The notes under the pieces were generated by a model. It did not search any database. It had not been told where the DNA came from and was given only the letters and a program-made list of their open reading frames with translations. A stretch of DNA of 64,000 nt from Heptranchias perlo. Lineage: Eukaryota. Where the stretch lies: the NCBI RefSeq assembly GCF_035084215.1, contig NC_090335.1:47926001-47990000 (forward strand). Reading direction: 5' to 3'. The position numbers were made by a program, and so were the translations under genes. The stretch's first letter is position 1. Every line of letters starts with the position of its first letter. Shown in pieces: positions 4,041-60,000 of this stretch.

Positions 4041-4913
4041 GGCCCCAATATTTACGAGGGTGCGGGGGAGCGTAGTAGTGCAGGGAAAACCCAGCAAGGC
4101 CCAGGACGCAGAGGTCCAGCCGAATTTAATGGCAGGACCTCATTATCATTTTTTCTTCCATTTCCCACCCGGAAGTCAGTCAAATTGAAAGGCAGGCCGA
4201 TTGCCGGGCCGGAAAACCGGCAGGAGGCCACAGCCAGGGACACTTGGGGACAGTCCCCAGCAATCAGTAGGGGGAGGGAGCAGGAGATTAGGGCTTGGTG
4301 GGGGAGAGGCCATCGCGGGAGGGAGGGAGTGAGACATTGAGGCTTGGTGGGGGGGAAGAGAGGCCATTGCGGGAGGGAGTGAGAGATCGGGGCTTGGTGA
4401 GGGGGAGAGAGGCCATCGCGGGAGGAAGGGAGTGAGAGATTGGGCTTGGTTGGGGGAGGGGAAGAGAGGCCATTGCAGGAGGAAGGGAGTGAGAGATCGG
4501 GGCTTGGTTGTGGGGGAGAGAGATGCCATTGCGGGAGGAAGGGAGTGAGAGATCAGGGTATGAGGGGAGGGATGTCAACTCCTGCTCCCCCTGGTCCACA
4601 AGGAGCGTGTTAAAGGCACTCAGCTTCTTAAGCCGGCAGCTCCCGCCTCCCTTTCACCGCCGGCTTTCCCGAGCCCTGGGAAACCCACACGGCAACTGTT
4701 AAATTTAAATCATGCTCCCAATTGCACTGTGGGAGCCCCATTTAAATATGTTAATGTGGCGGGACACTCGCACGACACGAAATCCGCTGCTGTAAAAATA
4801 GCAATGGGTGCATACACAGCAGGTTGGGGACATGTTCCCCGTTTTAAAAATTTTAACCCCCCCACTGCCCTGACCGTCTCCCGCTTGTCATGGGGTGGGT
4901 CAATATCGAGGCC
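4041..4913. mobile_element. Non-autonomous PIF/Harbinger-type DNA transposon (MITE-like) with internal ~57-bp G-rich tandem repeat (~4285-4570)
   Basis: TIRs ggccccaatatt (4041) and aatatcgaggcc (ends 4913), with AAT on both flanks (3-bp TSD). Internal unit gggcttggtggggggagaggccatcgcgggagggagggagtgagagatcg occurs about 5 times. Confidence 0.75.
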
Positions 4914-5790: not shown

Positions 5791-6475
5791 ATCCCCAAAA
5801 ACCATGACATTTTAGAAACCATGACTTAGAAGATCTGTTAATTTTTAGGTGAAAATCTCTGATCAGAAGTCAGTTTAACATTTGCAAAATTATCAATGAA
5901 AATGAGGAAAAACTGAAAACAACATTAATGTTACAGAAATTCTCTCTGCAGTATGTATTAGTCCTTTTCCAGTTTTCTCTCCCCTGCCATAAGGACACTG
6001 GAGGTTATATTCGATAGCCCTTGAAACCGGGCGTGGGCATCGCGGTCCGCGATTAACCCGTGCCTGGTACTTCCGTCGCAGGCAGCACGAGGCACTCATC
6101 CTGCCTGAACATTCACCTCAGCCAAGCGTTGAAATCCTGCGTTGACATGACGATTCCTTGAAATTTGATTTTCCCCAGAAGGGAGATCCTGAATCTCTTA
6201 AAGGCAGGCTGTATCTCTGACAGGTAGCCTGCATCTCTTAAAGGTTGTCTGTATCTTTTATTTGCAAAAAAATAAGATACGGGTCTGCATGGAGTCTGAA
6301 CGGAGATCAGACATCGCACATGTAAAACACAGATGCAGGTCCCGTCCCTATATTTACAAACTGTTGAGTTATGTTAAAACATTGAACAAAGGTTGCACAC
6401 CACTAAATCCCACATCCTCCAATCTGCAGGCCAGACCTCACCAATCTGCCAGTCCGAGTTGGTACCAGGCCTATG

Positions 6476-6704
6476 AGAGTGTGTACACCAAGGTTCTTTG
6501 CTGATGCACTAGAGGCCTTGGTGCAAGAGGTGGACAGGAGGAGGGGCATCCTATATCCGCAGATGGGGTGGGGGGAGGTGGCAAGAGGTCCTCCAGACAT
6601 ATGCCCAAAAGGCAGTGGGGGATGCAGTCAATGCCAGGCACATAGCACCACGAACATGGATGCAGTGCAGGAAGAAGTTCAATGCTTTGACTTGAGTGGT
6701 CAAG
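6476..6704 (+). pseudogene. Degenerate Myb/SANT-like DNA-binding exon of a Harbinger ORF (NAIF1/MSANTD-like)
   Basis: PRFFADALEALVQEVDRRRGILYP, then after frameshifts KRQW..DAVNARHIAPRTWMQCRKKFNALT*VVK|gtgagt donor. A second exon remnant EKVAHNRRQ lies at ~6970. Confidence 0.8.
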
Positions 6705-7052
6705 GTGAGTGAGGTCAACTGTCAATTGGCATCTCCTACCAATTGCACCACTAACCGCATCCACTGCTCCTTTCACTACACCCCCCATCACCCACCTACC
6801 AACAAACTCTTTCAATCAGTATTCAACTCTGCCAATCAGATGCTTCCTCTCACCCTCACACATTACCAATGTTGCAAGCCGCCCACCCACACCTCACAGG
6901 CCACACACACTGGCAGCTATTCAACCATGACAGGCACATCACCCAGATACACATCCCACTTTCTTGCAAGAGAAGGTGGCACATAACAGGAGGCAGCATG
7001 TGGCAGTGGCATTTAGCCCCTCGAGCCTGTTCCGCCATTCAATGAGATCATG

Positions 7053-7149
7053 CAGCTCCAGAACGTGAAGCGGATTCGGTTTAAGCGAGTTGAGAATTTT
7101 ATAAGAGACTCCAGGAGGAAATCCCGAGATGAAGTTCGGTTTGTTCGGA
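7053..7149 (+). pseudogene. RPL7L1: Captured ~97-nt fragment of an RPL7L1-like coding exon
   Basis: Absent from the sister copy (~46020-46040). Translates QLQNVKRIRFKRVENFIRDSRRKSRDEVRFVR, similar to recalled human RPL7L1 [27 protein letters not shown]. Confidence 0.75.
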
Positions 7150-7807
7150 CTGTGACTTAACTCCATATGCCCATCGTAGCCCCATATTCCTTAATATCCT
7201 TGGTTCACAGAAATCTGACAATCTCAGATTTAAAATTCTCAATTGAGCTAACATCAACTGCCGTTTGCAGAAGAGCGTTCCAAACTTCTCCCACCCTTTG
7301 CATGTAGCAGTGTTTCCTAACTTCACTCCTGCTTTAAATGTTAAGCTATGTCCCCTCGTCCGAGTGTACAAGTATAGGAGACCTCCAAAAACAAGTACAA
7401 ATGCATCAGCAGCCAGAAGCAATAATCCAAAAATTAACCTGTAAATCCTGCATGGTCCCTTTAAATAGCGCTGGTGGAGGGGTCCTCCAGGCCGTTTAAG
7501 ACATGTTTAGCTGGTCGTGGTTAAGACAGTGCGTTGAGTGGAGCGTTAAGTGCCAAAATGGTGCCTATCACTTTAAATCAGCATTGCACACTGATCGAAT
7601 GCATATTCTCCCTACTTTACACGATGCCCACGTTCGTTATCCGGGCATGCACTAAACCCTTTACCAAGATTCCACTTCTGCCATTTAATCACTTCCTGTT
7701 CTCCGCTTGCACTTTACAGGTCATTCTATTTCTTCTTCTGTTGCATGGTCATTGTGGGGTTTTCCCTCTTTGCCTTTCCCTTATTTTTGTGCCTTTTTAA
7801 ATGTTTT

Positions 7808-22035: not shown

Positions 22036-22535
22036 ATAAGAACATAAGAAATAGGAGCAGGAGTAAGCCAATCGGCCCCTCGAGCCTGCTCCGCCATTCA
22101 ATAAGATCATGGCTGATCTGATCCTAACCTCAAATCTAAATTCATGTCCAATTTCCTGCCCGCTCCCCGTAACCCCTAATTCCCTTTACTTCTAGGAAAC
22201 TGTCTATTTCTGTTTTAAATTTATTTAATGATGTAGCTTCCACAGCTTCCTGGGGCAGCAAATTCCACAGACCTACTACCCTCTGAGTGAAGAAGTTTCT
22301 CCTCATCTCAGTTTTGAAAGAGCAGCCCCTTATTCTAAGATTATGCCCCCTAGTTCTAGTTTCACCCATCCTTGGGAACATCCTTACCGCATCCACCCGA
22401 TCAAGCCCCTTCACAATCTTATATGTTTCAATAAGATCGCCTCTCATTCTTCTGAACTCCAATGAGTAGAGTCCCAATCTACTCAACCTCTCCTCATATG
22501 TCCACCCCCTCATCCCCGGGATTAACCGAGTAAAT
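22036..22535 (-). mobile_element. 5'-truncated young CR1 LINE (ORF2 end plus 3' UTR)
   Basis: Open ORF FTRLIPGMRG..RMRGDLIETYKI..RNFFTQRVVGLWN; tail (ttcttatgttcttat) on the minus strand. Confidence 0.92.
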
Positions 22536-41879: not shown

Positions 41880-44800
41880 TTACAACATGGAAACAGGCCC
41901 TTCAGCCCAACATGTCCATGTCGCCCAGTTTATACCACTAAGCTCGTCCCAATTGCCTGCACTTGGCCCATATCCCTCTATACCCATCTTACCCATGTAA
42001 CTGTCCAAATGCTTTTTAAAAGACAAAATTGTACCCGCCTCTACTACTGCCTCTGGCAGCTCGTTCCAGACACTCACCAACCTTTGAGTGAAAAAATTGC
42101 CCCTCTGGACCCTTTTGTATCTCTCCCCTCTCACCTTAAATCTATGTCCCCTCATTATAGACTCCCCTACCTTTGGGAAAAGATTTTGACTATCTACCTT
42201 ATCTAGGCCCCTCATTATTTTATAGACTTCTATAAGATCACCCCTTAACCTCCTACTCTCCAGGGAAAAAAGTCCCAGTCTATCTAACCTCTCCCTATAA
42301 GTCAAACCATCAAGTCCCGGTAGCATCCTAGTAAATCTTTTCTGCACTCTTTCTAGTTTAATAATATCCTTTCTATAATAGGGTGACCAGAACTGTACAC
42401 AGTATTCCAAGTGTGGCCTTACTAATGTCTTGTACAACTTCAACAAGACATCCAACTCCTGTATTCAATGTTCTGACCAATGAAACCAAGCATGCCGAAT
42501 GCCTTCTTCACCACCCTATCCACCTGTGACTCCACTTTCAAGGAGCTATGAACCTGTACTCCTAGATCTCTTTGTTCTATAACTCTCCCCAACGCCCTAC
42601 CATTAACGGAGTAGGTCCTGGCCCGATTCGATCTACCAAAATGCATCACCTCACATTTATCTAAATTAAACTCCATCTGCCATTCATCGGCCCACTGGCC
42701 CAATTTATCAAGATCCCGTTGCAATCCTAGATAACCTTCTTCACTGTCCACAATGCCACCAATCTTGGTGTCATCTGCAAACTTACTAACCATGCCTCCT
42801 AAATTCTCATCCAAATCATTAATATAAATAACAAATAACAGCGGACCCAGCACCGATCCCTGAGGCACACCGCTGGTCACAGGCCTCCAGTTTGAAAAAC
42901 AACCCTCTACAACCACCCTCTGTCTTCTGTCGTCAAGCCAATTTCGTATCCAATTGGCTACCTCACCTTGGATCCCGTGAGATTTAACCTTATGTAACAA
43001 CCTACCATGCGGTACCTTGTCAAAGGCTTTGCTGAAGTCCATGTAGACCACGTCTACTGCACAGCCCTCATCTATCTTCTTGGTTACCCCTTCAAAAAAC
43101 TCAATCAAATTCGTGAGACATGATTTTCCTCTCACAAAACCATGCTGACTGTTCCTAATCAGTCCCTGCCTCTCCAAATGCCTGTAGATCCTGTCCCTCA
43201 GAATACCCTCTAACAACTTACCCACTACAGATGTCAGGCTCACCGGTCTGTAGTTCCCAGGCTTTTCCCTGCCGCCCTTCTTAAACAAAGGCACAACATT
43301 TGCTACCTTCCTATCTTCAGGCACCTCACCTGTAGCTGTCGATGATTCAAATATCTCTGCTAGGGGACCCGCAATTTCCTCCCTAACCTCCCATAACGTC
43401 CTGGGGTACATTTCATCAGGTCCCGGAGATTTATCTACCTTGATGCGCGTTAAGACTTCCAGCACCTCCCTCTCTGTAATATGTACACTCCTCAAGACAT
43501 CACTATTTATTTCCCCAAGTTCCCTAACATCCATGCCTTTCTCAACCGTAAATACCGATGTGAAATATTCATTCAGGATCTCACCCATCTCTTGTGGTTC
43601 CGCACATAGATGACCTTGTTGATCCTTAAGAGGCCCTACTCTCTCCCTAGTTACTCTTTTGCCCTTTATGTATTTGTAGAAGCTCTTTGGATTCTCCTTT
43701 GCCTTATCTGCCAAAGCAATCTCATGTCCCCTTTTTGCCCTCCTGATTTCTCTCTTAACTCTACTCCGGCAATCTCTATACTCTTCAAGGGATCCACTTG
43801 ATCCCAGCTGCCTATGCATGTCATATGCCTCCTTCTTATTTTTGACTAGGGCCTCAATCTCCCGAGTCATCCAAGGTTCCCTATTTCTACCAGCCTTGCC
43901 CTTCACTTTATAAGGAATGTGCTTACCCTGAACCCTGGTTAACACACTTTTGAAAGCCTCCCACTTACCAGACGTCCCTTTGCCTGCCAACAGACTCTCC
44001 CAATCAACTTCTGAAAGTTCCTGTCTAATACCATCAAAATTGGCCTTTCCCCAATTTAGAATTTTAACTTTTGGGCCAGACCTATGCTTCTCCATAGCTA
44101 TCTTAAAACTAATGGAATTATGATCACTGGTCCCAAAGTGATCCCTCACTAACACTTCAGTCACCTGCCCTTCCTTATTTCCCAAGAGGAGGTCAAGTTT
44201 TGCCCCCTCTCTAGTCGGGCCAGCCACATACTGAATGAGAAATTCCTCCTGAATACACTCAACAAATTTCTCTCCATCCAAGCCCCTAATGCTATGGCTG
44301 TCCCAGTCAATGTTGGGAAAGTTAAAGTCCCCTACTATTACCACCCTATTTTTCTAGCAGCTGTCTGTAACCTCCTTACATATTTGCTCCTCAATTTCCC
44401 GTTGACTATTTGGGGGTCTGTAGTACAATCCTATCAAAGTGATCTCTCCCTTCTTATTTTTCAGTTCTACCCATATAGACTCCGTGGGCGAACCCTCGGA
44501 TATATCCCCTCTCACTACTGCCGTGATGTTCTCCCTAATCAAGAACGCAACTCCTCCTCCTCTCTTACCTCTTGCTCTATCTTTCCTATAGCATCTGTAC
44601 CCTGGAACATTGAGCTGCCAGTCCTGCCCCTCCCTTAGCCATGTTTCAGTAATAGCTATAACATCCCAATCCCATGTACCCATCCATGCCCTGAGTTCAT
44701 CTGCCTTGCCCATCAGACTTCTTGCATTGAAATAAATGCAGTTTAATCTAGACTTCCCTTGGTCTTTGCCCTGCTTTCTCAGACCATCTGTCCGGTCATG

Positions 44801-44890
44801 TTCTGTACACTCTTCCTTACTGCCTTTTGTTTCTGTCACCACTTTACTTCCCACTGACTTCCTGCATCGGTTCCCATCCCCCTGCCACAT
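41880..44890 (-). pseudogene. CR1 ORF2 (APE endonuclease + reverse transcriptase) with one nonsense codon (44354-44356) and one frameshift (~42450)
   Basis: ORFs 44354-44890, 42440-44344 and 41880-42455 join into one protein: YFNARSL..ITETW..YRPP..GDFNFP..SDHN..NYRPVSLTS..DFSKAFDKV..KFADDTK..LVRPHLEYC. Confidence 0.95.
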
Positions 44891-45360
44891 TAGTTTAAAC
44901 CCTCCCCAACAGCACTAGCAAACACTCCCCCTAGGACATTGGTTCCAGTCCTGCCCAGATGCAGACCGTCCAATTTGTACTGGTCCCACCTCCCCCAAAA
45001 CCGGTTCCAATGGCCCAGGAATTTGAATCCCTCCCTCTTGCACCATCTCTCAAGCCACGTATTCATCCTAGCTATCCTGTCATTCCTACTCTGACTAGCC
45101 CGTGGCACTGGTAGCAATCCTGAGATTACTACCTTTGAGGTCCTACCCCTTAGTTTAACTCCTAACTCCCTAAATTCAGCTTGTAGAACCTCATCCTGTT
45201 TGTTACCTATATCGTTGGTGCCTATATGCACCACGACAACTGGCTGTTCACCCTCCCCCTCCAGAATGTCCTGCAGCCACTCCGAGACATCCCTGACCCT
45301 TGCACCAGGGAGGCAACATACCATCCTGGAGTCTCGGTTGCGTCCGCAGAAACGCCTGTC
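44890..45360 (-). CDS. CR1 ORF1 C-terminal SGNH/GDSL esterase domain (5'-truncated)
   Basis: CLPGA..VVHIGTND..DGLHL esterase blocks; its stop overlaps the ORF2 start (TAATG). Confidence 0.88.
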   Translation of the reverse strand, partial: DRRFCGRNRDSRMVCCLPGARVRDVSEWLQDILEGEGEQPVVVVHIGTNDIGNKQDEVLQAEFRELGVKLRGRTSKVVISGLLPVPRASQSRNDRIARMNTWLERWCKREGFKFLGHWNRFWGRWDQYKLDGLHLGRTGTNVLGGVFASAVGEGLN

Positions 45361-45409
45361 TATTTGCTAAGTGCAAAAAGAAAACACAAAATGCCATTGC
45401 TGCCAGAAT

Positions 45410-47700
45410 GGGCCTGCTAGGGCCCGTTGTTTTGGCACAATGCGACCTCCTGAACATCTATGATGGCATCTTGGATGCGCATGCACGCTTCTAGCGTGAT
45501 GTGCGCCGGACACCACCTTGATAAAAGGTTTAGCGCATGCGCAAATAACGAACGCCGGCAACATGTAAAGTAAGGAGAAAATGCGTTTGATCAGTGTGCA
45601 ATGCTGATTTAAAGTGATAGACATCATTTTGGGACTTAACGCTCCACTCAACACACTGTCTTAACCACGACCATCTCAACATGCCCCCATTAGTACTATT
45701 TAAAGGGACCATGCAGGATTTACAGGTTAGTTGCTGGATTATTGCTTCTGGCTGCTGATGCATTTGTATCTGTTTTTGGAGGTCTCCTATACTTGAATAC
45801 TAGATCGAGGGATCATAGCCTAACATTTAGAGCCAGGACGTGCAGGAGTGAAGTTAGGAAATGCTTCTACATGCAAAGGGTGGGGGAAGTTTGGAACGCT
45901 CTTCTGCAGACAGCAGTTGATGCAAGCTCAATTGTGAATTCTAAATCTGAGATTGATAGATTCTGTGAATCAAGGGTATTAAGGGATATGGGACTAAGGC
46001 GGGTTTATGGAGTTAGGTCACAGATCAACCATAATCTCATTGAATGGCGGAACAGGCTCGAGGGACTAAATGCCACTGCTACTTTCTGCCTCCTGTTATA
46101 CACCACCATCTCCTGCAAGAAGGCGGGACGTGTGTCTGGGTGATGTGCCTGTCATGGTTGAATAGCTGCCAGTGCGTGTGGCCTGTGAGTTGTGAGTGTG
46201 CGGCTTGCAACAGTGGTAATGTGTAAGGGTGAGAGGAAGCATGATTGGAAGATTTGAGCACTGACTGAAAGAGTTTGTTGGTAGGTGAGTGATGGGGGGT
46301 GTATTGTGTGGAGCAGTGGATGCTGCTGGCGGTGCAGTTGGTAAGAGATGCCACTTGACAGTTGACCTCACTCACCTTGACCACTCAAGTCAAAGCATTG
46401 AACTTCTTCCTGCACTGCATCCATGTTCGTGGTGCTATGCGCCTGGCATTGACTGCGTCCCCTACTGCCTCCCACTGCCTTTTGAGCATATGTCTGGAGG
46501 GCATCATGCCCCCCTCAACCACGGATATAGGATGCCCCTCCTTCTGTCCACCTCTTGCACCAAGGCCTCTACTGCATCATCAGAGAACCTTGGTGCACGC
46601 ACCCTCGCAGGCCTGGTACCAACTCGGACCGGCAGATCGTTGAGGTCTGGGAGCAGATTGGAGGATGTGGGATTTAGTGGTGCGCAACATTTATTCAATG
46701 TTTTAACATAACTCAACAGTTTGTAAACATATGGACGGGACCTGCATCTGTGTTCTACGTGTGCAATGTCTGATCTCTGTTCAGACAGCAGATTGCTAGG
46801 TTCTCCAGTCTCTCATCCCTGGTACCATTCTAGTAAATCTCTTCTGCATCCTCTCTATGGCCTTGACATCCTAAAGTGCGGTGCCCATTGAATTGAACAC
46901 AATACTCCAGCTGAGGCCTAATCAGTTTTTAAGAGGCTCTTTAACTATCATCCCGCCAGCTTTAATTGCCAGCGGGATTTCCGGATTCGGGATGCCTGCG
47001 CACATACAGGTGCATCCATGGGGAACTCGGAAGACGGCGGGTTGGAACCGGCTTCAGAAACCGAATGGGATTTCCCCAATTTTCGGAGCCCCCCTGCCCC
47101 CAACGCACCTGCAATTTCCCGGGAAAATCGAGCCCCATGTTTTTATTAATTTTTTTAAGAGGTACAGCCTGCCTTTAAGAGATTCGGGCTCCACCCTGCT
47201 GGTGGAAAGTGCGAATGTCATGGAATTGTAGTGGCAAGTTTCATGGAATGGTGTGGTACAGCACAGAAGGAGGCCATTCGACCCATCATGCCTGTGCCTG
47301 CTCTTTGAAAGAGCAATCCAATTGGTCCCACTCCCCTGCTCTTTCCCATAGTCCTGTAAATGTTTTCCTTCAAGTACAATAAATTTTGAAAGTCATTATT
47401 GAATCTACTTCCACCATCCTTTCAGGCAGTTACATCCAGATCATAACAACTCGCTGCATTAAAAAAATGTTTCTTCATCTCACCTCTGGTTCTTTTGCTA
47501 ATCACCTTAAAACTCTGTCTTCTGGTTACCGACCCTTCTGCCACTGGAAACAGTTTCTCCTTCTTTCCTCAAGGCCTGGATTTTTCACATGCTCAAGGTA
47601 AGTTCTAATGTAGCACACCTGCGACCGGTTGACCGGGCACTGGTTAATCGCGCAATGCGATGCCCGCGCCCATTTTCAGGGGTTAACCAATTTAACTCCC
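45410..47700 (-). mobile_element. Non-autonomous Harbinger-like element, copy 2, interrupted by CR1 fragments (~46800-46930, ~47250-47565) and another repeat (~46940-47137)
   Basis: Minus strand RAPRFSDDAVEALVQEVDRRRGILYP..KRQWEAVGDAVNARRIAPRTWMQCRKKFNALT*VVK|gtgagt and ttcttgcag|GAGATGG. Same captured CR1 segment (~45800-46065) and same terminus (47700) as copy 1. Confidence 0.8.
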
Positions 47701-48300
47701 AAATTTTTTTCAGATTGGATGTACCACTTTAAAAGTTGGGCTAGGCTGCCACCTGGTGTACAAAACCTGCATTCCTCAATGCTTGATAAACACGGGCTTA
47801 TGCTGATCTGAGCAATGGAATCTAGTTTCCTAAGTCGCTATCCATTTACTCCATTGCACTCCTTTATTCCAATTATATGAAATCCTTGCTGCAGGCATAA
47901 TACATAAAGGTATCATTTTGATCCAATTATGTTAATGTTTTTTCCCAATATCAATATTTCTCATGCTCAGTATAAGCAAAGTTGTCAACCTGTGATCCAA
48001 TTACACAGGATTGCAGTCTGATATATGCTGTTAAAGAGGCAAGTTAGTTTTCATTCAGACTTACAGGCAAACTCAAACTGAAAACACAATTTGACAGGAC
48101 TGTTTTTAAGTGGAAGTTGCTGCCAGTTGTGCACGCCTAGTATGATTCTCTCGATCGTCCACGGTAACTTCGCCCTTTCTCTGGAATTTCCACGGATCTT
48201 CTGCCAACATTACGGCCTGCAATTGGGAGAAGCTCCATGGAATTTTAACACCTTGATGTTGTTTTTATGATTCTGTTGGTACCAGTATAAGTAATCAATA

Positions 48301-50820
48301 TCATAGTATCATAGTAGGTACAGCACAGGAGGAGGCCATTCGGCCCATTGTGCCTGTGCCAGTTCTTCGAAAGAGCTATTCAATTAGTCCCATTCCCCTG
48401 CTCTTTCCCCATTGCCTGTAAATTTTTTCCCTTCAAGGATTTATCTAATTCTCTTTTGAAAGTACCTATTGAATCTGCTTGCACCACCCTTTCAGGCAGT
48501 GCATTCCAGGTCATTACAACTCGCTGGGTAAAAATCATTTCCTCATGAGGCCTCTTGTTCTTTTGCTGATCACCTTAAATCTGTGTCCTCTGGTTACCAA
48601 CCATTCTGCCACTGGGAACAATTTCTCCTTATTTACTCTATCAATACCGTTCATGACTTCTATCAAATCTCCTCTTAACCCTCTCTGTTCTATGGAGAAC
48701 AACCCCAGCTTCTCCAATCTCTCCACATAACTGAAGTCCCTCATCCCTAGTACCATTCTAGTAAATCTCTTTTGCACCCTCTCTAAGGCCTTGACAGCCT
48801 TCCTAAAGTGTGGTGCCCAGAATTAAACACAATACTCCATCTGAGGCCTAACCAGTTATGCTAAAAGTTTAGCAGAACTTCCTTGCTTTTGTACTCTATG
48901 CCTCCATTAATAAAGCTCAGGATCCCATATTCTATTTTAACAGCCTTCTCAACTTGTCCTGTCACCTTCAAACATTTGTGTATGTGCACCTCAGGTCTCT
49001 CTGTTCCTGCATCCCCTTTAAAATTGTACCATTTAGTTTATATTGCCTCTCCTCATTCTTCCTACCAAAATGTATTACTTCACACTTCTCTGTGTTAAAT
49101 TTCATCTGCCCATTTCACCAGTCTATGTCCTCCTGAAGTCTGTTACTATCCTCCACATTGTTTACTACATTTTCGAGTTTCGTGTCATCTACAAACTTTG
49201 AAATTATAACCTCTATATCCAAGTCCAGATCATTAATATATATCAAAAGATCAGTGGTCCTAATACTGACCTCTGTGGAACACAACTGTACACTTCCCTC
49301 CAGCCTGATAAACAACCATTCACAAGTACTCTCTGCTTTCTGTCCCTTAGCCAATTTTGTATCCACACTGCCACTGTCCCTTTAATCCCTTCGGCTTTAA
49401 TTTTGCTATAAGTCTATTATGTGGTATTTTATCAAATGCCTTTTGAAGGTCCATATACATAACATGAACTGCACCACCCTTATCAACCTTCACTTCATCA
49501 ATGAACTCAATCAAATTAGTCCATCACGATTTTCCTTTAACAAATCCATGCTGTCTTTCATTTATTAGCCCATACTTTTCCAAGTGCCAATTAATTTTGT
49601 CCCGGATTATTGTCTCTAAAAGTTTCCCCACCACCGATGTTAGGCTGACTGGCCTGTAATTGCCAGGTTTATCCCTCTCCCCTTTTTTGAACAGGGGTGA
49701 AACATTTGCAATCCTTCAGTCCTCCGGCACCATCCCCATATCTAAGGGGGATTAGAAGATTGTGGCCAGAACCTCCGCAATTTCCATCCTTACTTCCTTC
49801 GTAACCTAGAATGCATCCCATCTGAACCAGGTGATTTTTCTACTTTGAGTACTGCCAATCTTTTAAGAACCTCCTCTTTATCTATTTTTATCCTATACAA
49901 AATCGCTACTACCTCCTCCATTACTGCTACAATGGCAGCATCCTCTTTTCTAGTGAAGACAGATGTGAAGTATTCATTTAGTACCTTAGCCATGCCCACA
50001 AGTAGATCTCCTTTTTTGTCCCTAATTGGACCCACCCTTCCTTTCACTACCCTTTTGCTATTTATATGTAAATAAAAGACCTTTGTGTTCCCTTTTATGT
50101 TAGCTGCTAATCTATTCTCATAATCTCTCTTTGCCCCTCTTATTCCCTTTTTTAGATCTCCTCTGTACTTTCTGCCTGGCTCTCTACAGTATTATGAACC
50201 TTACATTTGTCATAAGCCTTCTTTTTCCATTTCATTTTAATCTCTATATCTTTAATCATCTAGTGAGTTCTAGCTTTGGATGCCCTTCCTCCTCCCCCTT
50301 CCCCCTGTTTAATGTGTCTACTCTGTAGCCGAACCAACTCCTCCTTGAAGGCCACCCATTGTTCAATTACTGTTTTGCCTACCAATTTTTGATTCCAATC
50401 CATCTGGGCAAGAACCCTTTTTAACTCACTAAAATTAGTCCTCCTCCAGTTAAGTATTTTCACATTTGATTGTTCCTTGTCTGTTTCCATAACTATTCTA
50501 AGCCTAATGATATTATGATCACTGTTCCCCAAATTCTCCCCCACTGAAACGCGCTCCACCTGCCCACTTCATTACCCAGAACTAGATCCAGTACCATGTC
50601 CTTCCTGTTGGGCTGGAAACACATTGTTCCAGAAAGTTCTCGTGCACATTTCAGGAATTCCTCCCCCTCTTTGCCCTTTACATTGTTACTGTCTATATTG
50701 GGGTTATTGAAGTCCTCCGTTATCATTACCGTATAGTTCTTGCATCTTTCTATAATTTGCCTGCAAATTTGCTCCTCTATCTCCTTCTCATTATTTGGTG
50801 GCCTATGGTATACACCCAAT
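48301..50820 (-). mobile_element. Degenerate CR1 LINE (ORF2 from APE to 3' tail)
   Basis: Fragmented ORFs YHRPPNN..DFNNPNID..NSDHNII..KFVDDTKL..RGLRGDLIE; tail at 48301. Confidence 0.92.
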
Positions 50821-51034
50821 ATAATTGATCTGAACTTGGCAAATACACATACATGGACTGTCATCTGGCTCATATGTTTATTTGTACACATTTCTTATCG
50901 CAAGATTCTAAAGTCTGCTGATGGGCCTGTAGTGTATTTCCAGCAGTTTTGTTTTTTCATTTCAGTTTTAGTTTCTATTACTTTGTGATACCTGATTCCC
51001 CGTAATGTTTAATGTTTTGAGAGTTGTTAGTTAC

Positions 51035-51465
51035 ATTGAATTACATAGAATTTACAGCACAGAAACAGACCATTTGGCCCAACTGGTCTATGTTGGTGTT
51101 TATGCTCCACATGAGCCTTCTCCCACCCTACTTCATCTAATCCTATCAGCATATCCTTCTATTCCTTTCTTCCTCATGTACTTATCGAAGTTCCCTTTAA
51201 ATGCATCTGTGCTATTCGTCTAACTACTCCTTGTAGTAGCAAGTTCCACATTCTAACCACTCTCTGGGTAAAGAAGTTACTCCTGAATTCCCTATTGGAT
51301 TTATTAGCAACTATCTTATTGATGACCCCACAAATGGAAACATTTTCAGAATTTTAAAGACCTCTATCAGGTCACCCCTCAGCTTTCTCTTTCTAGAGAA
51401 AAGAGCCCCAGCCTGTTCATTATTTCCTAATAATTATAACCTCTCAGTTCTGGTATCATCCTTGT
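51035..51465 (-). mobile_element. CR1 3' fragment with internal deletion
   Basis: Tail catagaatttacagcacagaaacag..; aggtcacccctcagc..aagagccccagcctg corresponds to the RLRGDL region. Confidence 0.8.
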
Positions 51466-51756
51466 TGTGCTTGAGTTTCTAGAAATGCCTCCTAGTTAGT
51501 TGGGAGACTGGACAGCAATTCTTCCTGACACTAAATGGAGCATTAAACAATATGTCAGTTATTTACATCTTGTAATACAAATTACAATAAATTAAATGAA
51601 GCTAAATGTTAAAAATGACTGAATACAGAACACTTTTTTAAAAAGTGATCAGGTCTTAAAAGGAGCTCTGTACTAAAAGTTTATGCTAGTTCTTCCTCTG
51701 TAGCATTGGTGCAGAATAAGTTGCCATTCTTTCTAAAATCTGCTCCCTTGTGATGA

Positions 51757-53826
51757 CATTTCCACCTCTCCCAGTTTGAAGCCCTCCAGTCTGTCTTCTG
51801 CCCTGTCCGCAGCACTGAAACAGCACAAGTCAAATTCACCGTTGATAATCTATGTGATTGTGATTGCAGTTTGCTGTCCCTCCTCATTCTCTCCACCACT
51901 TTTGACACCATCCACCTTTGTGGCATTACTCTCCCCAGTTCCACTTTTACCTATCACACCATAGACATTACATCACATCCAATGCTTTCTCCTCCCATGC
52001 CTCCACAGTCTTTTACTATCTCCCATCCTGGTCGGTCCCCTGGTAAGGCCCCCATCTTTGTTTCTTCAATTCCAACGGGCACATCTGGCTCTCAACTGAT
52101 TTACCTATCCATCACCAGATCTGACTGGACAACATCAAACACTATCTAACCTAACTCTTCTGCCAAAACCGCCCACTACTCCAGGATCATCCTGGAGAGA
52201 AAAGATAACCCCTGGCTTTTTTTCTTCACTGCCAACCATCTCCTTAAATCCTTCTCTCCTGCCCCTTACACGCTCACCTCTAAGAATAAGTGCAAGGAGC
52301 TCATGACTTCTTTGTCACTAAGATTGAGACCATCCATTCACCTGCCTCTTTGCCTTGCCCACCAAGCCAAACCTTCCTCCACGCATCCCTTGCCCTAGCC
52401 CTGAACCCACATCAACCTAATTTCTCTATCTCCCCTTATGCCCTGTCCAAGCTTATCTCATCCATAACACAAACCCCCTGCTCCCTTAACCCCATTTTCA
52501 TTGAAGTTCTGACCACTCAACTTTGCTTACTGGCCCCTATGCTAGCTGACATTATGGTATCCTCTCCTGAGGTACTGCTGTGTACCTTTCAAAACTGCCA
52601 TCATCATCCTCTCCTCAAAAAGCCCACACTGGACCCCTCTGTCCTTCCAAACTACCGTCCCATCTCCAACCTCTCTTTCCTCTATAAAGTTCTTGAAAGT
52701 GTTGTCAACTCCCAAATCTGTACCCATCTTTTCCATAACTCAGTTTGAATTTCTCCAATCAGGTTTGCACTCCTGCCACAGCATTGAAATGGCTCTAATC
52801 AAAGTCACAAATGACATCCTCTGTGACTATGACCATGGTGCACTTTCCCTCTTCGTCCTCTCTGCAACCTTTGACATGGTTCACCACACCAACCTCCTCC
52901 TCCAATGTCTTTCCTCCCTAGTCAAGCCCAGTGGAACTGTCCTCGCTTAGCTGTACTCTTGGTTTTCAAGTCATAGCCAGAGCAAAAGAAATATCTTTTC
53001 TTCCCACCCCCTCACCTCGACCTCTGGAGTCCCCCCATGTAATTGCTGCCCCTTGAGACATCATCCACAGGCATGAGGTCAGCTTCCACATGTCAACTCT
53101 ACGTTTCCACCTTTCTCAACTGCATCTGTTCCATCAGACTGCTTATCTGATATCCAGTCTGGGATGAGTAACAATGTCCTCGTTAAACATTGGGAAAACT
53201 GAAACGATTGTCTTTGAACCCCCCCCCACCCCATCCCAAACTCCGTACCCTTGCTATTGATTCCATCCCGCTTCCCAGCCACTGTTTCTGGTTGAATCAG
53301 TCTGTTCACAACCTTGGCATCCTATTCAATCTAGAGCCGAGCTTCCGACCCCGTATCTTCCCCATCACAAAGACCGCCTACCACCACCTCCAGAACATTG
53401 CCCACTTCCATTCTGTCTCAGCCAATCTGCTGCTGAAACTCTCATCCATGCCTTTGTCACCTGCAGACATGACCATTCTTCTGGCTGTACTCCCATTTCC
53501 ACGCTCTGTAAACTTCAAATTATTGAAAACGGTGCCTGCTATGTCCTATCTCATATCAAGTCCTGCTTACCCATCACTCCTGTCCTCACTGATCTACAGT
53601 GGCTCCCGGTCCCCCGATGCCCCCATTCAAAATTCTCATCCTCATGTTTAAACTTTTTCATGGCTGTACTCATTCCTATCTTTGTAACCTTCTCCCATCC
53701 TATAACCACATCAGAACTTTCTGTTCCTCCAACTCTGGCCACTTGTGCATCCCTCCCTCCCATCACTGGTGGTCGTGCCTTCAGCCTCCTAGATCCCGCA
53801 CTTTGGAATTCCCTCCCTAAACTCCT
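51757..53826 (+). mobile_element. Degenerate L2 LINE ORF2 (RT) fragments
   Basis: PLLKKPTLDPSVLPNYRPISNLSFLYKVLE; QSGLHSCHSIEMALIKVTNDIL; VHNLGILF..ITKTAYHHLQNIA. The QSG-HSTE block occurs twice (~51780 and ~52755). Confidence 0.88.
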
Positions 53827-55695
53827 ATGAATATAAGAAATAGGAGCAGGAGTAGGCCATATGGCCCCTGGAGCCTGCTCCGCCATTTAATAAGATCTCA
53901 ACTTCCCGCCCGATCCCCATGTCCCTTGATTCCCTTAGAGTCCAAAAATCTATCAGTCTCAGTCTTGAATATACTCAATGACTCAGCATCCACAACCTTC
54001 TGGGGTAGAGAATTCCAAAGATTCACAACCCTCTGAGTGAAGAAATTCCTCTTCATCTCAGTCTTAAATCGCTCACCCCTTATCCTGAGACTATGTCCCC
54101 TAGTTCTAGACTCTCCAGCCAGGGGAAACAACCTCCCAGCATCTACCCTGTCAAGCCCTCTAAGAATTTTATACGTTTCAATGAGATCACCTCTCATTCT
54201 TCCAAACTCCAGAGAATATAGGCCCATTCTTCTCAATCTCTCCTCACAGGACAACTCTCTCATCTCAAGAATCAATCTGGTGATCCTTTGTTGCACCCCC
54301 TCTAAGGCAATTATATCCTTCTTTAGGTAAGGAGACCAAAACTGTACACAGTACTCCAGGTGTGGTCTCACCAAAGCCCTGCACAATTGCAGCAAGACTT
54401 CCTTATTCTTGTACTCCAACCCCCTTGCAATAAAGGCCAACAGACCATTTGCCTTCCTAATTGCTTGTTGTTCCTGCATTTTAACTTTCTGTGTTTTGTG
54501 GACAAGGACACCCAAATCTCTCTGAACACCAATATTTAGTAGTTTCTTACCATTTAAAACATATTCTGTTTTTCTATTCTTCCTACCAAAGTGAATAACC
54601 TCACATTTCCCCACAATATACTCCATCTATCACCTTCTTGCCCACTCACTTAACCTGTCTCTATCCCTTTGCAGACTCTTTGTATCCTCCTCATAGCTTA
54701 CTTTCCCACCTAGCTTTGTATCATCAGCAAACTTGGATACAATTCACTGGGTCCCTTCATCTAAGTCATTATTATATATTGTAAATAGCTGAGGCCCAAG
54801 CTCTGACCCCCACTATTTACAGCCTGCCAACCTGAAAATGACCCGTTTATCCTACTCCATTTTCTATACGTTAGCCAATCCTCTATCCATGCTAATATAT
54901 TACTCTCAACCACATGAGCCCTTATCTTGTGTAACAACCTTTTGTGTGGCATCTTAACAAATGCCTTTTGAATATCCAAATATACTACATCCACTGGTTC
55001 CCCTTTATCTACCCTGCTAGTTACATCCTCAAAAAACTCTAATAAATTTGTCAAACACAATTTCCCTTTCATAAAATCATGTTGACTCTGCCTAATCATA
55101 CTATGATTTTCTAAGTGCCCCGTTACCACTTCCTTAATAATGGATTTTTCCAACGACTGATGTCAGGCTAACTGGCCTGTAGTTCCCTGTTTTTTCTCTC
55201 CCTCCTTTCTTGAATAGCAGGGTTACATTTGCTACCTTCCAATCCACTGGAACCATTTTAAAATCTAGGGAATTTTGGAAGATTACAACCAATGCATCCG
55301 CTATCTGCAGCCACCTCTTTTAGAACCCTAGGATGTAGCCAACCAGGTCCAGGGGATTTGTCGGCTTAGTCCCATTAATTTCTCCAGTACTTTCTCTTTA
55401 CTAATATTAATCATATTCCTCACTCTCATTAGACCCTTGGTTCCTCACTATTTCTGGTATGCTTTTTGTGTCTTCTACTGTGCAGACAGATACAAAATAT
55501 TTGTTTAACGTCTCTGCCATTTCCTTATTCCCCATTATAATTTCTCCGGTCTCAGCCTCTAAGGGACCCACGATTACTTTTGCTAATCTCTTCCTTTTAC
55601 ATACTTGTAGAAGCTCTTACAATCTGTTTTTATATTTCTTGCTAGTTTAGTCTCAAATTCTATTTTCTCCCTCTTTATCAATTTTTTGGTCATCC
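53827..55695 (-). mobile_element. 5'-truncated CR1 LINE (RT to tail)
   Basis: ORFs 53898-54626 and 54761-55153 encode CR1 RT/C-terminal motifs; tail at 53827. Confidence 0.93.
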
Positions 55696-56370
55696 GCTCC
55701 GGGCCCACTATATTAACAACGACCTCCTGCTCGAACAGGCACACGAGAGGAAGTAGTCATCTCCGCCCATTGGAGAGGCCGCTTTAAACCCCGCCCCGTT
55801 GTCGGCCTCACATTCTGATTGGTGCTGGCTGCTGTCCGTTATCCGGAGAGGATTTAAAAGTACGGTACCCGGATGAAACTGGCGGTTTCCCGTCCCCGCC
55901 CCGGTCCCGGTTTATGATTGGGTGAGACCGGCAGAGCCGTCATTGGGAGGGAGGGCGGCGTCGGGCATCACGTGACGTGGATGAGCGGCGTGTGGAACAG
56001 TTGTGTCTTTGGTCGTCCGATAACAAGAGTGGAATGGAGAAGGTGATCTGCGACGAACATGGTACGTCTTTCAGTGCTGCGGAGTCGTTATTGGAAGTGT
56101 GTGCAAGTCGAGTGAATCCAGGGTGCTGTATCGTCATAGGATTCAGGTTTTGCAGACGTATTTCCGGAAGTGACGTATTTTTAACTGGCGGTTGGTGTGG
56201 CCAATCCAGAGCAGGTATTGGTTTTGGACCAATCAGTACGTTGAAAGCTGTGAACTTCCGGTAGCTTTCCACGTGGGACGATGACGTTCCGAGTCGCGGT
56301 GCTGACCCGGGTGATTTAGACTCGCTCGTGCAAGACCGGGACGTTCGTGCCCTCTTCTCGCGTGTTCAAA
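55696..56370 (+). promoter_or_regulatory. TTF2: CpG-island promoter of TTF2
   Basis: Only non-repeat CpG-dense region in the window. GC boxes (ccccgcccc), several CCAAT/ATTGG boxes, E-box/CRE tcacgtgacgt at ~55968, and ETS-CRE ccggaagtgacg at ~56164. Confidence 0.85.
56034..56061 (+). CDS. TTF2: TTF2 (transcription termination factor 2, SNF2-family) first coding exon
   Basis: ggaATGG Kozak; MEKVICDEH(G)|gtacgt, 28 nt, phase 1. Resembles the recalled human TTF2 N-terminus MEEVRCPEHG, and TTF2 is syntenic with the EWI cluster in human. No exon 2 was recognised in the window. Confidence 0.78.
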
Positions 56371-56535
56371 ACTGGAAGTTGCATTTATATAGCCCCCTTT
56401 ACATCGCTTCAAACTGTGCCAGAGTGCTTCCCATTCAATGCATTACTTCTGATGCGTAGTCGCCTATTATGGCGGCAAATACTGAAGCTAAACGTCCTCC
56501 CCCCCCCCCCCCCCATGATACTTTGAAGAAAGTAG

Positions 56536-57056
56536 GAATAAATGCATCATTTTCGGGTTGGCAGGTTTGTAACGAGTGGGTTGCTGCAGGGACTGGTGCT
56601 CGGGCCTCAGTTGTTTACAATCTGTATTTATGACTTAGATGAAGGGACCGAGTGTAATGTATCCAAGTTTGCTGAGGATGGAAAGCTAGGTGGAAAAGTA
56701 AGCTGTGGGGAGGATACAAAGAGTCTGCAAAGGGATATAGAAATGATAATTGCTAGGGAAGAAGGTGGTAGATGGAGTATAATGTGGGGAAATGTGAGGT
56801 TATTCACTTTGGTAGGAAGAACAGAAAAACAATATTTTTTTAAATGGTGAGAAACTATTAAATGTTGGTGTTCAGAGGGATTTGGGTGTCCTTGTCCACA
56901 AAGTTAACATGCAGGTACAGCAAGCAGTTAGGAAGGCAAATGCTGTGTTGGCCTTTATTGCAAGGGAGTTGGAGTACAAGAATAAGGAAGTCTTGCTGCA
57001 ATTATATAGGGCTCTGGTGAGACCACATCTGGAGTACTGTGTAGTTTTGTTCTCCT
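56536..57056 (+). mobile_element. CR1 fragment, left part of an element split by a 5-kb insertion
   Basis: GLLQGLVLGPQLFTI..KFAEDGKLGG..LVRPHLEYC; ends at ..ttctcct and resumes at 62088. Confidence 0.88.
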
Positions 57057-60000
57057 AGAACTGTTACAGTACAGAAGGAGGCTATTTGGCTCATCGAGCC
57101 TGTGCTGGCTCTTCGTAAGAACAATCCAGTTAGTCCTGTTCTGCTTTTTCCCAGTAGTCCTGCAAATTCTTTCCCTTCAAATAAGAACATGAGATAGGAG
57201 TAGGCCATTTGGCCCTTTGAGCCTGCTCTGCCATGCAATGAGATCATGGCTGATCTGATTCTGGCCTCAATGCCACTTTCCTGCCTCAACCCCATATCCT
57301 TTGACTCCCTTGCTGATCAAAAATTTGTCTTAACGCAGCCTTGAATATATTCAGTGACTCAGTCCCCATTGCTGTTTGGGGCAAAGAATTCCAAAGGTTC
57401 ACAACCCTCAGAAGAAATTTCTCCTCATCTCCATCTTAAATGGGTGGCCCCTTATTCTGAGACTATGCCCCCTAGTTTTAGATTCCCCTATGAGGGATAA
57501 TATCCTCTCAGCATTTACCCTGTCAAGCCCCCTCCAGAATCTTATATGTTTCAATAAGATCTCCTCTCATTCTTCTAAACTCCAGTGGGTATAGGCCCAA
57601 CCTGCTCAATCTTTCCTCATAAGAAAACCCTTCCATACCTGGAACAACCTAGTGAACCTTCTCTGAACCACCTCCATGCAAGTATATCCTTCCTTAAATA
57701 AGGGGACCAAAACTGTACGCAGCACTCCAGGTGCCGTCTCACCAGCACCCTGTACAATTGTAGCAAGACTTCCCTGCTTTTATACTCCATCCCCCTTGAA
57801 ATAAAGGCCAATATTGCATTTGCCTTCCCAATTACCTGCTGCATCTGTATGCTAACTTTGTGTTTCATGTACGAGGACACCCAAATCCCTCTACCGCAGC
57901 ATTCTGTAGTCTTTCTCCATTTATATCATATTTTGCTTTTTTATTCTTCCTACGAAAGTGGGTGACTTCACATTTTCCCACATTATATTCCATCTGCCAA
58001 ATTTTAGCCTACTCGCTTAACCTATCTATCTCCCTTTGCAAACACTTTGTGTCTTCCTCATAACTTACTTTTCCACCTATCTTTGTATCAGCAGCAAATT
58101 TGGCCACAGTACACTAGCTTCCTTCATCCACGTCATTGATATAAATTGTAAATAGTTGAGGCCCCCGCACTGATCCCTGCGGCACCCCACTGGTTACAGA
58201 TTGCCATCCTGAAAATGACCCCTTTATCCCAACTCTCCTGTTGGCTAGCCAATCCTCTATCCATGCTAATATATTACCCCCAACACCATGAGCTCTTGTG
58301 CAGTAACTTTTTATGTGGCACCTTATCGAATGCCTTTTGGAAATCTAAATACACTTCATCTACTGGTTCCCCTTCATCCACCCTGCTCGTTACTTCCTCA
58401 AAGAATTCTAATAAATTTGTCAAACAATTTCCCTTTCATAAAACCATGTTGACTCTCCTTGATTTTATTTTGAGTCTCTAAATGTCCTGCTACTACTTCC
58501 TTAATAATCGATTCTATCATTTTCCCAATGACAGATGTTAGGCTAATTGGCCTATAGTTAGTGACCTGCTTTCTGTCTTCCCTCCTTTCTTGAATAGGGC
58601 CGTTACATTTGCGGTTTTCCAATCCGCTGGGACCTTTCCAGAATCTAGTGAATTTTGGAAAATTACAACCAATGCATCCACTATCTCTGTAGCCACTTCT
58701 TTTAAGACCCTCGGATGCAAGCCATCGGGTCAGCCTTTAGACCCATTAGTTTGCCTAGTACTTTTTCTGTAGTGATAGTGATTGTTTTTAGATCCTCCCT
58801 CCCCTTTGCCCCTTGATTATCTACTATTATCGTTATGCTTTTAGTGTCTTTTACTGTGAAGACAGATACAAAATATCTGTTAAATGCCTCTGCCATTTCC
58901 TTGTTTTCAATTATTATTTCTCCAGTCTCATCTTTTAAGGGACCTATACTTAGTTTAGCTACTCTCTTCCTTTTTATATAGTTGTAAAAGCTCTTATTGT
59001 CAGTTTTTATATTTCCTGCTAGTTTACTCTCAAACTATTTTCTCTTTTTTTAGCCCTTCTTTGCTAATTTCTAAAATTTTCCAAATCTTCGGGCTTACCA
59101 CTCATCTTTGCCACGTTGTATGCCTTTTCTTTTAACTTGATACCATCCTTAACTTCCTTAATTAGCCATTGTACACCCTTCTCGTGGAGTCTTTCCTCCT
59201 TACTGGGATATATTTTTGTTGAGAGTCATAAAATATCTTTTTAAATGTCTGCCGCTGCTTATCCACTGTCATACCTTCTAATCTGTTTTCCCGGTCCACT
59301 TTAGCCAACTCTGTCCTCATGACATTGTAACTGCCCTTATTTAGGTTTAATACAGTAGTTTCAGATCCAAAATCCTCACTCAAACTGGATGTGAAATTCT
59401 ATCTTCTTATGATCGCTGTTTCCTAAAGGATCCTTTACTTTGAGGTCATTAATTAATCCTGTCTCATTACCCATTACTAGATCTAAAATGGCCTGTTCCC
59501 TGGTTGGTTCCAAAACATATTGTTCTAAGAAACAGTCCCAAATACACTCTATGAACTCATCTTAAGGGCTACTTTTGCCAATTTGATTTATTCCATCTAT
59601 ATGAAAGTTAAAATCACCCATGATTATTGCATTACCTTTTTTACAGGCCCCCATTATTTTTTGATTTATATTTTGCCCTCTGGTGTAGCTACTGCTAAGG
59701 GGCCTATAGACTATCCCCACCAGTGATTTCTTACCCTTGCAATTTCTTACCTCCACCCAGATTGATTCTACATCTTGATCTTCTGAGCCAAGATCATTTC
59801 TCACTATTGTACTCATTTCATTCTTTATTAACAGAGCTACCCTACCATCTTTTCCTTTCTTCCTATCCTTCCGAAATGTCAGATAGCCCTGAATATTCAG
59901 TTCCAAACCTTGGTCACCTTGCTACCACGTCTCTGTAATGGCAACGAGATCATACCCATTTGTTTCTATTTCTGCTGTCAATTCATCTATCTTATTACAA

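Follow-up and report, generated by a model that had tools for sequence, protein, structure and literature searches.

The stretch of DNA analysed here, referred to below as the window, comprises 64 kb of the Heptranchias perlo genome (assembly GCF_035084215.1, contig NC_090335.1, positions 47,926,001-47,990,000 of the forward strand). Within it, we identified two copies of a composite element, each consisting of an outer element and a repeat nested inside it. In one of them (copy 1), the nested repeat was found to be interrupted by a short insert that resembles part of the coding sequence of RPL7L1, and in the other (copy 2) the equivalent site is unfilled (Table 1).

Table 1. Coordinates of the insert, its flanks and the two host element copies within the window
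Feature	Position	Strand	Basis and remarks
Copy 1 of the composite host element, made up of the outer element and the nested repeat, with the insert	6294-7668 (about)	+	blastn, MAFFT
Left flank: first part of the nested, very high-copy repeat (...CCATTCAATGAGATCATG), ending at the break point	7010-7052	+	Contig depth; matches at 22075, 53858, 57206 and 62563
Insert, RPL7L1-like coding piece	7053-7149	+ (sense strand +)	32 in-frame codons plus 1 nt; Ribosomal_L30_N region; aligns to human RPL7L1 residues 53-78
Right flank: nested repeat resuming (CTGTGACTTAACTCC...)	7150-7350 (3′ limit approximate)	+	In register with copy 2 from 46023 down; weaker with other family copies
Copy 2, composite host element with unfilled site	45517-46786 (about)	-	GTTGAT at 46029-46024; blastn, MAFFT, repeat search

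The interrupted repeat and its empty site

Local blastn aligned the part of copy 1 to the left of the insert (6294-7052) with positions 46786-46030 of copy 2 (88.2% identity over 769 columns), and the part to its right (7150-7668) with positions 46023-45517 (82.4% identity over 529 columns); the divergence between the two host copies amounts to 12-18%. Between these two blocks, 97 nt of copy 1 stand against the 6 nt GTTGAT of copy 2, a result obtained with local blastn and, concordantly, with MAFFT. The junctions of copy 1 read ...CAATGAGATCATG / CAGCTCC...GTTCGGA / CTGTGACTTAACTCC, and the equivalent site of copy 2, read on the minus strand, is uninterrupted (...caatgagattatg-gttgat-ctgtgacctaactcc). 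The bases lost from the target number six, and they read GCTGAT in the repeat family and GTTGAT in copy 2.

Inspection of the junctions revealed no direct repeat flanking the insert: the sequences on its two sides are GAGATCATG and CTGTGAC, with no duplicated bases (no TSD). Nor is there an A-run or any polyadenylation-linked end at the 3′ side of the insert, which terminates with ...GGTTTGTTCGGA. On these points our results agree with the initial annotation. The position, letters and translation that it gave for the insert were all correct on re-reading of the sequence, the exchange of about 6 nt of copy 2 for 97 nt in copy 1 was reproduced by both alignment programs, and the reported lack of a TSD and of poly(A) was borne out.

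Frame 1 of the insert (7053-7148) is free of stop codons and translates as QLQNVKRIRFKRVENFIRDSRRKSRDEVRFVR. Stops are likewise absent from two of the five remaining frames, which both belong to the reverse strand, and the open frame alone is therefore no proof of a coding origin. A word-7 blastn search found no second match to the insert within the 64-kb window, and a search for a small-RNA origin gave no Rfam match at E<=1 over positions 6900-7400.

An ATG derived from the repeat, at position 7050, happens to lie in frame with the insert and opens an accidental ORF of 36 codons that is closed by a TAA at 7158-7160; upstream of the insert, an in-frame stop is present at 7014-7016. A complete RPL7L1 gene was not found at this site, where only 32 codons are bordered by repeat sequence on either side. 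The insert shows no sign of function: it has the appearance of a dead fragment that lacks both a promoter and the surroundings of a gene, it has no evident role, and nothing suggests that the accidental ORF is used.

Upstream of the block shared by the two host copies, MAFFT revealed approximately 600 nt in copy 2 that are absent from copy 1 (46786-47700 (-) compared with 6004-6294 (+)), and blastn detected only short matches in this region (6004-6082 and 6142-6218). The difference is probably the result of another nested insertion in copy 2 or of a deletion in copy 1.

Pfam searches of the outer element returned a weak Myb_DNA-bind_4 match in a 28-aa piece (6609-6692; E 0.11, 13.4 bits against a cut-off of 27 bits), and there was no match for the ORFs located at 6473-6709, 6262-6501 and also 6473-6610. 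The nested repeat gave no blastn match to the single RT-bearing LINE ORF of the window (42440-44341, -). The labels used in the initial annotation, Harbinger for the outer element and CR1 for the nested repeat, are therefore to be taken as putative.

Family copies and sequencing contigs

Further members of the nested repeat family were sought with a 14-nt pattern, which occurs eight times in the window at <=2 mismatches, compared with 0.86 occurrences expected. Alignment of the eight sites revealed four clear family members (22094, 57231, 62543 and copy 2), which carry ATGG(C/T)TGATCT at the position of the insertion. Among the remaining aligned sites, 53883 is gapped at this position, and 25497 and 54174 look like chance matches. 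The 97 nt are absent from all of the other aligned sites, and the reading of the family at the insertion site, as given by its consensus and by the other copies in the window, is ATGGCTGATCTG.

We also compared the contigs of four public runs, all from one organism and sample, with positions 6600-7600 at 85% likeness (Logan contigs). Two of these runs are DNA (X1 and X2) and two carry the label 'RNA?' (X5 and X8), which was guessed by the tool. Such contigs drop rare variants and collapse near-identical ones, and holes in their coverage prove nothing. As many as 1016 contigs of X1 and 936 of X2 depart from the window after position 7052 and read on as GCTGATCTG.... Together with the family copies, these contigs lacking the 97 nt indicate that an insertion into copy 1 took place, with loss of 6 nt, and not a deletion of family sequence elsewhere.

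The contigs also located the boundary of the nested repeat, since 977 contigs of X1 extend upstream of 7010 with different letters, which identifies this position as the junction between the nested repeat and the outer element. The nesting is thus real, as the initial annotation had proposed: a very high-copy repeat starts at approximately 7010 inside an older element which is present twice in the window. The nesting predates the duplication of this element.

Summed contig depth on the flanks of the insert ranged from 1e5 to 1.6e7, with the peak of 1.6e7 reached in X1 at positions 7008-7041. Over positions 7076-7143, in contrast, the depth was 47.7 in X1, 455 in X5 and 635.5 in X8, provided in each of these runs by one contig, and 0 in X2. 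The value for X1 resembles that of single repeat copies (36-84 for the X1 pieces listed). That each run with coverage has just one contig there, between extremely repetitive flanks, indicates that the insert was not amplified with the element. Among the contigs listed, none had the window's own A at both 7103 and 7116, and none bridged the junctions 7052/7053 or 7149/7150.

The nested repeat was abundant in both of the probable RNA runs, with a summed contig depth of about 4e5 at positions 7008-7041. Either the family is transcribed or these runs contain DNA.

Four diverged copies of one repeat family (70-82% identity), each with a length of 500-865 nt or more, were found in the window at 22036-22534, 53826-54683, 57196-58050 and 62602-62087 (-). 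They are relatives of the nested repeat, and the point of the unit at which they begin is nearly the same in all four. Such a common start is more in keeping with an element whose 5′ end is fixed than with the tails of randomly truncated LINEs. A 241-aa ORF located inside one of these copies (53898-54623, -) gave no Pfam match.

Similarity to RPL7L1 and the second locus

The resemblance of the insert to RPL7L1, which the initial annotation had proposed, was confirmed by searches of PDB, Pfam and representative proteins and by a profile search. When the 32 residues were compared by phmmer with 177,635 distinct PDB sequences, only one match was returned, to residues 53-78 of human RPL7L1 (8fkp_SI; E 0.003). 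The Pfam family Ribosomal_L30_N was detected in the peptide with E 0.0013 and 19.4 bits, a score that falls below the gathering score of 31.6 bits because the piece is only 32 aa long. A further phmmer search, against 1.84 billion cluster representatives, yielded a single protein at E<=0.001 (P0001; E 1.4e-5, 71% identity). This protein of 55 aa, whose residues 1-31 align with residues 2-32 of the insert, is a partial hypothetical protein of the shark Chiloscyllium punctatum (NCBI) which carries PF08079 and originates from a contig of 2698 nt.

A profile built from two sequences, the insert and this shark protein, placed human RPL7L1 first (E 4.8e-11), followed by uL30/RPL7 chains at 2.9e-8 and weaker, with 36 sequences at E<=1. 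A homologue search with the same profile had four candidates within 0.55-1.75 times the query length, a range that leaves proteins of about 250 aa outside, and it returned only the shark protein. A search of a protein atlas gave no usable match, and none of these searches yielded a full-length RPL7L1 from a cartilaginous fish. Chance similarity to RPL7L1 was rejected on the strength of the sole PDB match and the sole match among the representatives. These sequence comparisons confirm a likeness beyond chance and point to a derivation of the insert from RPL7L1 and not from its paralogue RPL7/uL30.

At positions 7103 and 7116, the single contig found on the insert in X1, X5 and X8 has C instead of the A of the window. 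The from_end values of this contig at the two positions are 47 and 34 in all three runs, which means that the contig, or its matching part, has its right-hand end precisely at 7149 and extends leftwards to 7057 or beyond. A contig derived from copy 1 itself would continue into the flank, and the end at 7149 therefore points to another locus, which carries the 97 nt and diverges at their edge. Judging from the contig table, the end at the insert edge reflects either unlike sequence beyond it or a branch in the assembly graph, and both require a second locus. The sequence from which the insert was templated is thus apparently still present elsewhere, in the form of the locus whose contig matches at least 7057-7149 in these three runs.

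Neither of the two differences between the insert and the second locus alters the encoded residue (ATA>ATC, Ile; AGG>CGG, Arg). Synonymous changes make up only 69 of the 288 possible single changes in the insert (24%), so that under neutrality both would be silent by chance with a probability of about 0.06, which gives a mild hint that the second locus is under selection. The contig matching the insert is about 10 times deeper in the two 'RNA?' runs than in the DNA run, and this depth fits a housekeeping transcript. On the basis of homology, and of the depth in runs guessed to be RNA, the second locus is apparently the RPL7L1 gene itself, in an expressed state.

Two listed differences in at least 93 nt make the insert about 98% identical to the second locus. 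Since the host copies differ from each other by 12-18%, the insertion must have taken place long after the host element was duplicated.

Origin of the insert, known parallels and other features of the window

We consider it likely (with a probability of roughly 0.8) that the organism's own RPL7L1 coding sequence supplied an internal piece of 97 nt, which was copied a single time into one copy of the nested repeat, most likely as an end-joining patch. According to this model, a double-strand break would have occurred in the germline, in a repeat copy that was old and already nested, and a stray fragment would have been used as a patch in end-joining repair, with 6 nt of the target being lost. 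The patch may have been a short cDNA reverse-transcribed from RPL7L1 RNA, or else a DNA copy of part of the RPL7L1 locus, and the donor gene would have been left intact and expressed. A templated insertion made during double-strand-break repair was already the proposal of the initial annotation; it is supported by the RPL7L1 origin of the insert, by its restriction to copy 1 and by the anatomy of its junctions, and it is from these that we infer the break, the pathway of repair and the nature of the template.

Among the alternatives, a replication-based template switch (FoSTeS/MMBIR-like) would be a DNA-templated variant that involves no free fragment: a replication fork that had stalled or broken would have used 97 nt of the genomic locus of RPL7L1 as its template before returning. 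Such a switch would be expected to have the same outcome, namely a short templated insert, a small loss of target and no TSD. It would also fit if the first CAG of the insert were an intron acceptor, the Chiloscyllium model starting at the next codon. The hallmark of such switches is microhomology at the junctions; nothing in the present data separates this explanation from the patch model, and we regard it as distinctly unlikely. A LINE-mediated retrocopy, in other words a fragment of a processed pseudogene (class 1 insertion), produced when a LINE endonuclease nicks the target and target-primed reverse transcription follows, draws some support from the fact that the donor seems to be transcribed and from the presence in this genome of LINEs with endonuclease and RT domains, such as the ORF at 42440-44341 (-). 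However, a TSD, poly(A) and an mRNA 3′ end are all lacking. The insert comes from the interior of the coding sequence, corresponding to residues 53-78 of a 255-residue protein, and its target lost 6 nt and gained no duplication. This combination rules out ordinary LINE-mediated retrocopying, as well as transposon insertion, and leaves a retrocopy of this type very unlikely. A cDNA patch made by reverse transcriptase may be seen as an endonuclease-independent variant, which is included in the end-joining explanation.

Still less likely is a chimera of the assembly or of reads, which would mean that the insert is not truly present at this locus. The lack of the window's own insert variant among the contigs listed, and the depth of 0 in X2, are in line with such an artefact. 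The missing variant is nevertheless to be expected, since Logan contigs collapse near-identical variants; moreover, the element is in exact register on both sides of a clean 6-nt replacement, and the two differences from the other locus indicate that the insert is not a misplaced read of the gene. Pack-type capture, by which a transposon (said to be a Harbinger) took the RPL7L1 fragment and carries it as cargo, is highly improbable. Pack-MULEs and other Pack-type elements hold a gene fragment between their terminal repeats and multiply it with the element. Copy 1 is similar in that a host gene fragment lies inside a transposon, and in favour of capture are the presence of the element twice in the window and the faint Myb/SANT-like piece (E 0.11) in its outer part. 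In contrast to Pack-type elements, there is a single copy with the fragment, whose position is within a secondary, nested repeat and whose age is far below that of the element. The initial annotation had linked such a capture to the occurrence of the insert in other copies of the family; in the event, the only other composite element of the window lacks it, there is no second match in the window, and each run with coverage has one contig on the interior of the insert, at single-copy-like depth (47.7) between flanks of 1e5-1e7. With an identity of about 98% to the expressed copy, as against the divergence of 12-18% between the element copies, the fragment must have arrived long after the element had stopped moving. 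The lowest probability of all attaches to the view that the 97 nt are part of the repeat-family consensus and were deleted from copy 2. Nothing speaks for it besides the two-copy comparison, which alone gives no direction. It is refuted by the family copies reading ATGGCTGATCTG and by the DNA-run contigs that continue as GCTGATCTG after 7052, so that the insertion is private to copy 1, as the initial annotation had supposed; in addition, the insert shows homology to an exon that is protein-coding and conserved in vertebrates.

For the end-joining patch, the edges of the insert may hold information on the template. The initial annotation had pointed out a likeness of the left edge, tgcag|CTC, to a splice acceptor. 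The partial Chiloscyllium model begins at a Leu which aligns with the second codon of the insert, directly after its first codon, CAG. Judging from this alignment, the start of the model would fit the start of an exon, and CAG is equally typical of the end of an intron and of the end of an upstream exon, which makes this only a hint. At the opposite edge, the matching contigs of both probable RNA runs terminate exactly with the insert, as would be expected if a transcript graph branched there because an exon ended. A patch that is exon-precise, or that at least starts at a splice acceptor, seems unlikely to us, with a small but appreciable chance of being correct. If both edges should coincide with RPL7L1 exon boundaries, or if the CAG should be intronic, the template would have been an unspliced or partly processed transcript, a product of splicing or genomic DNA, and not mature mRNA. 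An exon-precise patch, if true, would constitute a natural germline record of the species of nucleic acid used for the patching of breaks in a cartilaginous fish.

The anatomy of the insert matches that of class 2 templated sequence insertions (TSI/TSIP), as these are characterized in the review PMC5110952, which draws on the work of Onozawa et al. (2014 and 2015) on human cells and populations. In that account, class 2 insertions (i) have neither a TSD nor poly(A), (ii) show a micro-deletion or microhomology, (iii) come from donors enriched for transcribed sequence, and (iv) are interpreted as patches of double-strand breaks made by end joining in the germline or early embryo. The insert in copy 1 shares with them its origin as a short copy of a distant, putatively transcribed and intact locus, the absence of a TSD and of poly(A), the micro-deletion of the target and its heritable (germline) nature. 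Unlike the human cases reviewed there, it is found in another vertebrate, within an old nested repeat, and its origin from RNA is only a candidate.

The same review treats processed pseudogenes and other LINE-mediated retrocopies as class 1 TSIPs, with which the insert has in common that its source was probably a cellular transcript; it differs from them in the lack of a TSD, of poly(A) and of an mRNA 3′ end, as it consists of 97 internal coding bases only. Filler DNA at end-joined breaks, for which the review cites mitochondrial DNA (NUMTs) and the capture of cDNA in yeast (Yu and Gabriel 1999; Teng et al. 1996), offers another parallel, in that a break is sealed with unrelated nucleic acid and bears the scars of end joining. 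In contrast to NUMT or retrotransposon filler as described there, the donor in the present case is a nuclear protein-coding gene, and not organelle DNA or a retrotransposon.

Repair scars of this type are already known, and the insert represents a further example of them; a single non-functional scar of 97 nt by itself alters no current view. It does provide a clean natural case of a chromosome break that would have been repaired by means of sequence copied from an unrelated host gene, in which the empty site has been kept in a sister copy and the donor is recognisable. If read in this way, it suggests that templated patch repair, known from human cells and populations, leaves heritable scars outside mammals too. 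A genome-wide catalogue of such inserts, including the boundaries of their donors, could reveal whether the usual template is RNA or DNA.

Several other features of the window were recorded in the course of this analysis. The open frame of 633 aa at 42440-44341 (-) contains an RVT_1 domain (E 6e-35) together with the terminal part of an endonuclease domain (Exo_endo_phos_2, E 1e-6), and a further frame lies downstream (41880-42452, -). According to these domain matches, the former is the ORF2 of a non-LTR retrotransposon, fairly well preserved and unrelated to the repeat that bears the insert. In the region 4272-4558, blastn detected a tandem-like internal repetition, in which the sequence matches itself (78-85% identity) at offsets of about 100, 150 and 210 nt. 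Finally, a strong negative GC skew, reaching -0.44 per 2 kb and accompanied by a negative AT skew, is sustained over approximately 20 kb (42000-62000), and nothing like it occurs in the first 40 kb of the window.
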